Assembly (NCBI GenBank): GCA_028826165.1
Contig: JAPDFW010000084.1
Location: 186,001 to 250,000, forward strand
Origin: Anaeramoeba ignava BMAN
Taxonomy: Eukaryota > Protista > Anaeramoebae
DNA length: 64,000 nt
Reading direction: 5' to 3'
The notes below the pieces were generated by a model. The model did no database searches. It saw only the letters and a program-made list of their open reading frames with translations, and had not been told where the DNA came from. The translations under genes and the position numbers were made by a program. Of the stretch, positions 62 to 6,000 are shown piece by piece (the stretch's first letter is position 1; every line of letters starts with the position of its first letter).

Positions 62-3000
62 ATGGAATTTCCTTCTCAAAATGAACTAAGTCAATTTACT
101 TTCCCAAAATTTCAAATAAGACAAAGTTATTCTGCAGAAAAAGATCAATGCATTGAATTTCTTGAAAAATTTAGTGAAGATTCAAACGAATATAAATATT
201 TAGATAAAATTGTATAAATAAATTTTTTTTTAATTAAAAAATTTTTCTTCTAACCGTTAAAATATTTAAATTAAAAAATTATTTTAGAAAGCAATTATTC
301 AAAGAAAATCAAAACAAATTGAAATTGAATTAGATGACTTGATTTCAGTAAATGATTTTATTATTTTGAAATTTAATAAAAACAAATTTAATAAAAAAAA
401 TTCTTTCTTTTCTTTTCTTTTTTTTTTCTTAGTTCGAATCACCTAATTCTACACTTGTCAAAAATATTGAAAAGAACACAATGAGATATTGTGATATTTT
501 TGCAGAAGCAGTTGATCAAATTATTCAAAAAATTAGTCCAGAAGTAATAAATAATTTTATTATATTGAATAAAATAAAATAAAATAAAAAAGTGGAATAA
601 ATTTTTCATTTTAAAATCCTTTTTGTTTTTTTTTAGATTCCTCAAATTGATATTGAAGATGTAAATGATATTATTACAACTTTCCGTCAACAAGCTGAAA
701 AAAATGAGGATTCACAAAATACTTCAAATAATTTCCCACCTGATTTATTAAGAAGATTGTAAACATTAATATTATTTATAAATTTATTTTTAAATTTATT
801 TTTTTTGTTATTTTAATTAATAGTGAAATTCGAATTATTCCTCGAAAGAAAACAAAAGTTACAAAATTAAGACAAGTAAAATCAAATTGTGTTGGAAAAC
901 TTGTGAAAGTTAGAGGAATTATTACAAGAATTACTCAAGTGAAACCAGAAGTAAAACAATAAAATTAAAATTCAAATTAAAATTAAAATCAAAATTAAAA
1001 TCAAAATCAAAATCAAAATTTAAAATCAAAATTAAAATCAAAATTAAAATCAAAATTAAAATTAAAATCAATATTAAAATCAAAATCAAAATTAAAATCA
1101 AAATTAAAATTTAAAATCAAAATTAAAATCAAAATTAAAATCAAAATTAAAATTAAAATCAATATTAAAATCAAAATCAAAATTAAAATCAAAATTAAAA
1201 TTCAAAATCAAAATTAAAATCAAAATTAAAATTAAAATTAAAATTAAAATTAAAATTAAAATTAAAAATTAAAATTAAAATTAAAATCAAAATTAAAATC
1301 AAAATCAAAATTAAAATTAAAATTAAAATTAAAATTAAAATTAAAATTAAAATCAAAATTAAAATTAAAATTAAAATCAAAATTTAAATCAAAATCAAAA
1401 TAAAAATCAAAATTAAAATTAAAATTAAAATTAAAATTAAAATTAAAATTTAAATCAAAATCAAAATTCAAAATCAAAATTAAAATTAAAATTTAAAATT
1501 AAAATTAAAATCAAAATCAAAATCAAAATTAAAATTAAAATTTAAATCAAAATCATAATTAAAATTAAAATCAAAATTAAAATCAAAATTAAAATTAAAA
1601 TCAAAATTAAAATTAAAATTAAAATTAAAATTTAAATCAAAATTAAAATTAAAACCAAAATCAAAATTAAAATAGATTAAAGTAGCAACTTACACTTGCG
1701 AAACTTGTCCAAATGAAATTTATCAAGAAGTTACTAGTCAAAACTTTATTCCTCTTTCAGAATGTCCATATTGTAAATCAAATGGAGTAACAAGTGTTCT
1801 TCAACTTCAAACTCGTGGATCTAAATTTGAAAAATTTCAAGAACTAAAACTACAAGAAATAGTAAATTAAAAAATAAAAAAGAAAATTTTTGATTAAAAA
1901 AAAAATTCTCATCAAATTTGATCCAAAAAAAAAAAATTTTTTTCTTTCTTTCTTTTTTTTTCTTTCAATTTTAGTCAAGTGAAGTTCCAACAGGAAATAT
2001 TCCAAGAATTTTAACAGTAAATTTGCATGGAGAACTTACAAGAAAATGTTCACCAGGAGATGGAGTTACGATATCAGGAGTTTTTTTGCCAAGACCATTT
2101 ACTGGATTTCGAGCTTTAAAGGCAGGATTAATTACTGATACATATCTTGAGGCTATGCAGATAGAAAAGGAAAAGAAAACATACTCAGAACTCACACAAT
2201 ATTCGGAACAAGAAATGATCCAAAAAATAGAAACAAGTTCTAAAGATCCAGATATTTATACACGTTTGGCTCAATCTCTTGCACCTGAAATTTATGGACA
2301 TTTGGATATTAAGAAAGCAATGCTTCTTCTTTTAGTTGCTGGACAGACAAAAGAAATGAGTGATGGAATGAAAATACGAGGCAATATCAATGTGTTACTT
2401 GTTGGAGATCCTGGAGTTGCAAAAGTAAAAATTTTCAATTCGAAATTTTATTTTAAATTATAAATGAATTTTAATTTTAATTTTAATTTTAATTTTAATT
2501 TTAATAATTTTAATTTTAATATTAATTTTGATTTAAATTTTGATTTTGATTTTAATTTTAATTTTATTTAAATTTTAAATGAATTTTAATTTTAATATTA
2601 GAGTCAATTACTTAAACATATAACCCAGATTTCTCCAAGAGGAATTTACACAACTGGAAAAGGTTCTAGTGTTCATCGTGACGAAAAAGTCTTTGTCAAA
2701 ATTGGAAAAGAAATTTTGTTAGAATCAATTGGAAATATAATTGACAAGCAATTAGAAAATAATTCTCAGAAAAAAATGGAACAAAATTCGATTTTGGCTA
2801 AACCAAAACAACCGCTTGAAGTTCTTTCAGTAAGTCCAACAGGAAATGTTAAATTTAGCAAAGTTTATTGTGTTTCTAAACATCTTAGTCAAGAAAATTT
2901 AATAAAAATTACTACTCGATTTGGAAGTAAGATCATTGCAACAAAGGATCATTCATTTTTGATTCGAGGAACAAATGGATGCATTATCCCGCAAAAGGGA

Positions 3001-6000
3001 AATCAACTAAAGAAATTTGATAAAATTCCCATTTTGAAAAAACTAAGAATTGATAAGAAAATGATTGTCGAAAAAATACAAATTTATGATATTTTTAATA
3101 ACAAACAAAAAAAGAAAATTATAAGCAAAATCCACAATAAACCACTTAGCAAATTAACTAATGAAGAAAAATACCAGATCAATACTGTTTATTGCAAGTT
3201 GGAAAACTCAAAGGAAGATGTCAATAACACAATCATTCTTGATTTCCATCTTGGATTTTTATTGGCAGCTTTTTTGACAAATGGAACTAAAGTTTCGGAA
3301 AAAACTTGCAAGATTTCAAGTTCAAATGAAGAATATTTAAATTTTTGCAGAGAAATAATACAATCAAAGTTTAAATACAAATGCAAAATTGTTGAAGAAG
3401 GAAATTCAAAGTTTTTAGAAATTGGAAGTTATATTGTTTCATCTTTATTGCTCAATTTGAGTCGAAATCAAGAAGGAGATGAAGAAATAATTGAACAAAT
3501 TCTATTATCGCGTGATTCTTGTGTTTTTGGAATGATAAGTGGATTTTTCAATAATACAGAAAAGATGATTCAATTTAAAGGAACAAGATCAGGGTTTGCG
3601 ATGAATTCTTCAAAATTAGCACAAAAATTTCAATTGCTATTAAACAGGATTGGAGTTGATTCTCGTATTTTGATTTCTCTCAATGAAGAAACTTTGCAAA
3701 AGCAATATCAAATGGATTACAAAGAGAAGAAAATTTTGGTTGATTACGGAAATGGAAATATTACACAAATTCCTTTTAAAAAATTGGTATATAACGGAAC
3801 ACCAAAAATATTGTTCCAGATGAAATATGAAGAGAAAATCAAATTATCTAACCAAAACAAGACATATCAATATTGTGTTCTTGTTGAAGCGAAATATTCG
3901 AGATTTTTTGGATATCAATTTGAAGGAGATCATTTGGAATCTGGAATTAACGATGAAAAAAACAAAATTAGCAAAGATGTCATGTTTGATGATATTATTG
4001 GGATTGAAGAGATTCCCAAAAGTAAACATGAATGGGTTTATGATTTTGCAGTTGATAACGAAAGTTTCATGCTTTCAAACGGGATATTTGTCCACAATTC
4101 AGGAGTAGGATTAACAGCAGCTGTTCTTCAAGATTCGGTCACAAAAGAGTTTGTTCTTGAAGGAGGAGCTTTAGTTCTTGGTGACATGGGTGTTTGTTGC
4201 ATTGATGAGTTTGATAAAATGGATGAATACGATAGAACAGCAATCTACGAAGTGATGGAGCAGCAATCTGTCTCAATTGCCAAAGCGGGAATAACTGCAA
4301 CATTGAATGCAAGAACATCTATTTTGGCAGCTGCGAATCCATCTCATGGAAGATATAATCCACGAAGACCTATAACCGAGAATATAAATCTTCCTATTGC
4401 GGTATATTTTTTAAAAGAATATTTATTTCAATATTTATTTCAATATTTATTTCAATATTTTTTAAAAGAATATTTTAATGTTTATTTTAATATTTATTTT
4501 AATATTTATTTTAATATTTTAATATTTATTATAATATTTATTTTAATAATTTTAATATTTATTTTAATATTTATTTTAATATTTATTTTAATATTTATTT
4601 AATATTTATTTCAATATTTATTTTAATATTTATTTTAATATTTATTTTAATATTTTAATATTTATTTTAATATTTATTTTAATATTTATTTTAATATTTA
4701 TTTTAATATTTATTTTAATATTTATTTTAATATTTATTTTAATATTTTATTTTAATATTTTTTAATATTTATTTTAATATTTATTTTTTATTTATTTATT
4801 TTTTAATATTTATTTTTATTTATTTAAAATATTTATTTTTAATATTTATTTATTTTTAATATTTATTTTTAAATATTTATTTAAATTTATTTATTTTTAA
4901 TATTTTATTTATTTAAATATTTTATTTTAATATTTATTTAAATATTTATTCATTTAATATTTATTTAATATTTATTTTTAATATTTATTTTATTAAAATA
5001 TTTATTTCAATATTTTTTCAATATTTATTTTAAATTTATTTAATTTTTATTTTTTTTTAATATTTATTTTAATATTTATTTTATTATTTATTTCTTATAA
5101 ATATTTATTTTATTAAATATTTATTTTAATATTTATTTAAATATTTCAATATTTATTTTAATATTTATTTTAATATTTATTTCAATATTTATTTAAATAT
5201 TTTAATATTTATTTAAATATTTTCATTTCTTTAGTTGATGTCCCGATTCGATCTCATCTTCATCCTGATTGATAAGCCCGAGCTCAATAGTGATTTAATA
5301 CTTGCTAGACATATTGCACACGTTCATCAATACGGAACACCACCTGATCTGGGATTTGAACCTTTTTCCACAGATTTTATCCGAGCTTACATTGCACAAG
5401 CAAAGCAAATCGATCCATATGTGCCTGAGGAACTAAGTAGTTATATTGTCGAATCTTATGTCTCACTTCGTAAAAACGATGGATTTCTTCAAATGGCAAA
5501 CATAAACAACCAAATGGATCAAACAAACAATGATGAGAAGATGAATGAGAAGGAAAATAACGAAAGAAACATAAATCAAAGCACAATTTCACAAACAGAT
5601 GAACCCATCACGCCACGAACATTGCTAAGTATTCTTCGCTTATCTCAAGCACTGGCAAGAATACATTTTTCTGAAGTTGTTAAAAGAGAACATGTCGATG
5701 AAGCAATTCGACTCTTTTACATCTCAAAAGCTTCCGTTGATGATCCTAATTATACAATCACTTCTTCAACTTCAAAAACCAAAATTCCTCAACGTTATCC
5801 TGATCCAAAAACAGCAATTTATAATATCATTCGAGATGCAGCTGTTGTTCCTGATGATACAAATGAAGGAGCTACTAAATCAGTTAAATATGAAGATATT
5901 TTACCTCGTGTTTTGTCACGTGGTTTTACTCAAAATCAATTGGATAATTGTTTGGAAGAATATGAAAAATGGAATATTTTGCAACTGAATTCAAACCGAA

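Follow-up and report, generated by a model that had tools for sequence, protein, structure and literature searches.

A class-1 intein with a decayed endonuclease domain in the nuclear MCM7 of Anaeramoeba ignava

What is the in-frame insert of 477 codons in the MCM7 gene of Anaeramoeba ignava BMAN, where does it come from, and why has it been kept? These questions are raised by a stretch of 64,000 nucleotides (contig JAPDFW010000084.1, positions 186,001 to 250,000; assembly GCA_028826165.1), hereafter called the window. Judged from its sequence, the segment 2668-4098 is a class-1 intein in a nuclear MCM7. It is best explained as a constitutively splicing, selfish intein that no longer homes and that would have been kept because it lies on an essential residue, a reading to which we give a probability of about 0.85.

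The intein as such is already known. The GenBank protein KAJ5071925.1 (UniRef A0A9Q0LHF9; the same protein of 1264 residues) is named 'intein-containing DNA replication licensing factor mcm7 precursor'. The element had therefore been recognised as an intein, although the record name is silent on nuclease decay and origin. According to the survey by Gallot-Lavallee et al. (2023; PMC10710043), A. ignava BMAN has 103 inteins, with three each in MCM6 and MCM8; among these, one in MCM6 has 185 residues (site c) and one in MCM8 has 160 (site e). These MCM6 and MCM8 counts and sizes were recovered on contigs C106 and C71. The survey also describes homologous inteins that occupy equivalent positions in different MCM paralogs, introns close to unoccupied sites, a single novel site in MCM, and donors among viruses. 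Its Fig. 5C covers MCM3-9 and the legend lists MCM7, whereas the main text names neither MCM7 separately nor exportin. An earlier note on this DNA, made from the letters alone, had described the element. Novelty is not supported and the discovery value is small, as the protein is deposited under the same description and the inteins of the organism are published.

Identification of the intein

The insert is encoded on the forward strand. It runs for 477 codons without a stop, begins with Ser and ends with His-Asn, and it is preceded by GKGS and followed by SGVGLTAAV. The searches with Hint and LAGLIDADG hidden Markov models (HMMs) that the earlier note had proposed all scored above the respective cut-offs: TIGR01445 at 43.7 bits (cut-off 24.5), TIGR01443 at 23.3 bits (15.6), PF14890 at 50.6 bits (35.8) and PF14528, in two stretches, at 29.4 bits (22.5). 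In an alignment of 61 sequences T92, H95, Y458, D459 and H476 did not vary at all, and S1 and N477 hardly did. The set of class-1 residues (S1, T92, H95, D459, H476, N477 and the +1 Ser) is complete, as the earlier note had stated. An AlphaFold model of the intein, built from the alignment, reached a predicted local distance difference test score (pLDDT) of 80.8 and a predicted template modelling score (pTM) of 0.81, with residues 371-433 unresolved. Foldseek matched this model to the TliVMA, PI-PkoII, PhoVMA and PI-PfuI inteins with E-values from 4e-24 to 3e-17. Class-3 inteins are defined by a non-nucleophilic first residue and by the block F Cys of a WCT triplet; that class was ruled out by Ser1 and by a block F, Y458-D459-F460, that is without Cys. 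An Rfam search of the window gave no match.

The exteins are flush with the host alignment: the 44 residues that precede the insert correspond to yeast Mcm7 445-488 and the 99 residues that follow it to 489-587, and in human MCM7 the junction falls at 409/410 (a slash marks a junction here and below). Because the exteins abut in the Mcm7 alignment, no host residue has been lost and removal of the insert would restore the host exactly. The 477-residue in-frame intein at GKGS/SGVGLTAAV that the earlier note had read from the letters is thus confirmed by the open frame, the HMMs and the seamless alignment. The features of the gene are as follows.

62-6023, forward: MCM7 gene, nine exons and eight introns
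62-211, 288-347, 433-543, 637-758, 824-950, 1676-1861, 1975-2424, 2602-4401 and 5235-6023, forward: MCM7 exons
2425-2601, forward: phase-0 spliceosomal intron that coincides exactly with the unoccupied Walker-A intein site (GDPGVAK/SQLL, MCM site a), absent from transcript contig X4
2602-2667, forward: end of the N-extein, 22 residues, the last of them GKGS, aligned to yeast Mcm7 up to 488
2668-4098, forward: 477-residue class-1 Ser1 intein, precursor residues 425-901, identified by HMMs and structure model and retained in mRNA
2668-3042, forward: N-terminal Hint splicing region (TIGR01445), with Ser1 at 2668-2670 and block B T92xxH95 at 2941-2952
3223-3702, forward: decayed LAGLIDADG endonuclease domain, approximate bounds, from PF14528, column counts and I-DmoI fold matches
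3973-4098, forward: C-terminal Hint region (TIGR01443), with block F Asp459 at 4042-4044 and block G His476-Asn477 at 4093-4098
4099-4101, forward: +1 Ser nucleophile, which provides the conserved helix-2-insert DNA-binding hydroxyl (residue 489 in yeast Mcm7, 410 in human MCM7)
4402-5234, forward: last spliceosomal intron (GT..AG), AT-rich and repetitive; contig X4 passes from 4401 to 5235

The identity of the host as MCM7 follows from its flanks, of which the best PDB matches are all MCM7, and from the last exon, which matches the MCM7 winged-helix model; the Pfam domains are MCM_OB, MCM, MCM_lid and HTH_MCM7. All nine exons are present verbatim in KAJ5071925.1 (P0173), where the intein occupies residues 425-901, and in an exon by exon check against this protein the introns were GT..AG in eight cases out of eight. 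The earlier note was therefore right about an MCM7 host with eight introns, and also in naming Anaeramoeba as an intein-rich source, since the genome is that of A. ignava and the protein is annotated as intein-containing. Removal of the intein from the 1264-residue precursor is predicted to leave a mature protein of 787 residues. The two long introns of the gene (951-1675 and 4402-5234) consist of degenerate short AT-rich repeat units.

Retention of the insert in mRNA

A contig of 3867 nucleotides from public run X4 joins 1861 to 1975, 2424 to 2602 and 4401 to 5235, while the insert is continuous throughout. It is taken as derived from mRNA because these three intron joins are present. The EukProt transcript open reading frame P0166, whose sequence cluster includes KAJ5071925.1, likewise encodes the whole 477-residue intein; it differs at four positions, and X4 shows the same variant at each of them. 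Single contigs span the insert in the DNA run X1 and in the transcript-like run X4. The transcript check for intron removal put forward in the earlier note therefore shows the insert retained while three neighbouring introns are gone.

The insertion site

The universally conserved helix-2-insert DNA-binding hydroxyl (S357) lies four residues before a Leu, L361, that is equivalent to HsMcm7 L414 and ScMcm7 L493 (PMC13201583). From the spacing to these residues it follows that the conserved hydroxyl is the +1 Ser of the intein. As this Ser is an essential DNA-binding residue, the unspliced precursor is probably unable to work in the MCM ring and probably only an exact loss of the intein is tolerated.

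The site lies 22 residues past the Walker-A Lys. Haloarchaeal MCM inteins are found at 0, +27, +66 and +80 from this Lys (positions 335, 362, 401 and 415), and archaeal MCM site e adjoins Walker B, unlike the MCM7 site. With the letters assigned as mapped here from the text of the reports, the MCM7 site differs from the archaeal sites a-e. The archaeal Cdc21/MCM inteins at these sites, as described in PMC4760082, PMC3972481 and PMC10643990, resemble the MCM7 intein in host family, AAA+ core, class-1 chemistry and LAGLIDADG type, but belong to a different intein lineage.

In A. ignava the +22 site is also occupied in MCM5 (405-residue intein) and MCM6 (411-residue intein). In a scan with junction patterns, inteins at the same position were recovered from MCMs of Woesearchaeota, Nanoarchaeia, RBG_16_50_20, Methanosarcinales metagenome-assembled genomes and metagenomes. 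The viral contigs yielded no such MCM with the junction pattern, which is narrow and makes this a weak negative. The archaeal inteins at GKG[ASTV]/[ST] sites (L047-L067, e.g. L050, L053, L054, L060 and L066, and P0048:840-1292) have Ser1, measure 453-508 residues and form a well-supported clade; their site could not be matched to any of the published sites a-e, and an acidic LAGLIDADG motif 1 is retained in at least three of them.

By motif reading, five of the six MCM2-7 subunits of A. ignava carry inteins. The same reading placed inteins at the Walker-A site in MCM3, MCM4 (two copies, C2 and C17), MCM6, MCM8 and MCM9 (contigs C2, C17, C66, C67, C71, C80 and C106); MCM2 was the only one to show no intein in the ATPase core. 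At the Walker-A site MCM7 has an intron, where other A. ignava MCM paralogs have inteins. MCM8 and MCM9 have an intron at or just upstream of their Walker-A intein. The second intein of MCM8 runs across two reading frames (an intron or a break). An intron is found about 10 nucleotides past the empty +22 site in MCM3 and about 11 nucleotides past the filled one in MCM6. The MCM6 case indicates that a nearby intron is not strictly exclusive of an intein.

Decay of the endonuclease domain

In LAGLIDADG motif 1 the MCM7 intein has Asn205 (3280-3282) in place of Glu/Asp, and motif 2 reads NNTE instead of DGDG, with Thr297 at 3556-3558. Among its relatives 45 of 57 have E or D at column 205 and 40 of 57 have D at column 297; the acids are also missing from the A. 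ignava MCM5 and exportin-1 inteins. An active homing endonuclease was rejected as both catalytic acids are lost, though the two-motif domain and the I-DmoI fold are present. The endonuclease is probably dead and the intein would no longer home. 'Full-length', as the earlier note had called the element, is correct for its size but not for its endonuclease.

In a comparison based on contigs only, public runs and assembly differed at six positions, every one of them within the intein (p about 0.04 for an even spread over exon DNA), with the reservation that the difference at 2832, common to all three runs, may be an assembly error. Five of the six run-to-run differences are non-synonymous and located within or downstream of the nuclease region. 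The clustering of variants in the intein fits relaxed selection.

Relationship to other inteins

Within the genome the best matches to the MCM7 intein were the inteins of MCM5, MCM6 and four exportin-1 proteins, followed by that of the RNA-polymerase large subunit on contig C1. Outside A. ignava the best 150 hits were mostly inteins at the QM/TL site of the RNA-polymerase largest subunit, with none above E 1e-30, and the best NCBIfam match was PRK14898 (9e-38). Among the external matches, two with a named taxon are archaeal (a Lokiarchaeota RpoA'' and Micrarchaeota). Two further matches come from contigs that are densely packed with genes, many of them unknown; RING, NIF and HSP70 genes are present on one of these contigs, and we infer that they are giant-virus-like. 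Over the splicing domain the MCM7 intein scored 120-122 bits to the two closest exportin inteins, 100-110 bits to RNA-polymerase inteins and 32-59 bits to archaeal inteins of the same site.

The RNA-polymerase largest-subunit inteins (archaeal RpoA'', RPB1-like, QM/TL) are the closest sequence family and share the Ser1 and His-Asn ends, but their host and flanks are unrelated and most of them retain the LAGLIDADG acids that the MCM7 intein is without. The exportin-1 inteins of A. ignava (e.g. KAJ5073961.1) are, with those of MCM5 and MCM6, its nearest kin; they are 38-42% identical to it over the splicing domain and their nuclease motifs have decayed too; their host is non-homologous and the DNA near the two sites is little alike beyond the +1 Ser codon. 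Four exportin-1 paralogs (on C13, C72, C93 and C12; L036-L039) each have an intein of 519-537 residues at IKDM/SCDTF; the protein on C93 is named 'intein-containing exportin-1 precursor' by NCBI. The RNA-polymerase largest subunit at C1:472500-482400 (L040) has an open frame of 2952 residues with a 462-residue intein at QM/TLN and a second intein-like segment three residues past the first, a tandem layout common to many RPB1-like metagenomic matches.

In an unrooted tree of the splicing domains (42 rows, picked partly by similarity to the query; 181 columns) the MCM5, MCM6, MCM7 and exportin inteins formed a clade with support 95/94, situated within the RNA-polymerase group (90/97). The archaeal inteins of the same MCM site formed a clade of their own (100/99), separate from the A. 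ignava MCM inteins. Descent from these archaeal inteins, by homing into the same site or by inheritance from an archaeal ancestor, would be the expected origin under the allelic rule, the more so as archaeal MCMs hold Ser1 inteins of 453-508 residues at exactly this position. It is nevertheless unlikely, given the low splicing-domain scores to these inteins compared with those to the RNA-polymerase and exportin inteins, and given that a tree in which both groups were forced together was rejected (p-AU, approximately unbiased test, 0.005), even though composition would draw the A. ignava rows towards the archaeal group. Outside A. ignava the closest relatives are the inteins of RNA-polymerase large subunits from archaea and from virus-like contigs, and the donor would have been archaeal or viral. 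This agrees with the donor proposed in the earlier note, in so far as it does not imply a sister relation to the archaeal MCM inteins of the same site. On balance we favour, with some reserve, two separate invasions of a single MCM site by intein lineages that are not related to each other, one of them of RNA-polymerase type, which moved into exportin-1 and MCM5/6/7. The locus may then serve as a clear example of how an intein spreads between non-allelic sites and between paralogs, the same position in archaeal MCMs being occupied by an unrelated lineage.

Splicing and persistence

As a constitutively splicing, selfish intein the element would behave as follows. The transcript has eight GT-AG introns, three of which are seen to be removed, and retains the intein, giving the 1264-residue precursor. 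Conserved residues and standard class-1 chemistry suggest that Ser1 would undergo an N-O acyl shift assisted by T92/H95 and D459, that the +1 Ser of the extein would attack next, and that Asn477 would then cyclise with His476. An O-N shift would finally rejoin GKGS-SGVGLT to the 787-residue MCM7. As to its history, a member of the RNA-polymerase-large-subunit family of inteins, which is represented in archaea and on giant-virus-like contigs, may have entered an Anaeramoeba ancestor, from there colonised exportin-1 and the MCM site non-allelically, and spread across MCM5, MCM6 and MCM7, after which the nuclease would have been lost. That only an exact loss is tolerated at a DNA-binding Ser would explain why the intein persisted after endonuclease decay. 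It may thus illustrate how an intein with a dead nuclease persists with an essential DNA-binding Ser as its +1 residue.

Several points weigh against this account. The splicing tests described in PMC10710043 concerned other inteins, so that for MCM7 splicing is predicted only, and the death of the nuclease is read from motifs. The alignment behind the tree is short (about 181 columns). In a larger quick tree of 79 rows the MCM trio did not fall within the exportin clade, a placement that was weakly supported. A shared AT-driven composition may help to unite the A. ignava rows; despite this composition the A. ignava RNA-polymerase intein stays outside the MCM/exportin clade.

The earlier note had suggested that MCM7 needs both RNA and protein splicing and that replication licensing could thereby be conditional on splicing. 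The need for RNA splicing is confirmed by the introns removed in X4, and that for protein splicing is predicted; conditional licensing is not supported. Were the intein an exapted regulator, conditional splicing (in response to redox, metal or DNA) would gate MCM loading, and an intein on the DNA-gripping Ser together with inteins in most MCM subunits would mean that protein splicing gates eukaryotic licensing. The position of the insert on the DNA-binding Ser of MCM7 and the inteins in five of six subunits speak for such a role, and conditional splicing has been reported for prokaryotic replication proteins in the part of the literature available. Intein sites are very different between two Anaeramoeba species, with only eight common to both, and selfish persistence at essential sites accounts for the pattern without regulation. 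A regulatory function is therefore considered improbable, but with its Ser1 and +1 Ser the MCM7 intein is a ready candidate for asking if conditional splicing occurs in any nuclear intein of eukaryotes. A reading of the segment as an intron or as an artefact of assembly, to which an intron-rich gene and an AT-rich insert (GC 0.28 versus 0.35-0.40 in the flanking exon parts) might point, is refuted by the X4 contig, which is without the neighbouring introns yet has the insert, and by P0166, in addition to the 477 open codons with intact intein motifs and the single-contig coverage in X1 and X4.

Other features of the window

A gene on the reverse strand that converges on MCM7 has a weak BRCT match at 7268-7774 (PF16589, E 0.009) and may resemble the N-terminal motif of Dbf4. 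Two near-identical tandem copies of a class-III aminotransferase (PF00202) lie at 8136-8858 and 10981-11991, also on the reverse strand. A DOCK-family gene on the forward strand (21596-26690) has long exons with a GC content of up to 0.41-0.47, compared with mostly 0.1-0.3 across the window. An NIPBL/Scc2-like gene is located at 36357-40544, and three near-identical tandem genes for coiled-coil and BTB proteins, which differ in their N-termini, lie on the reverse strand at 45326-51580.

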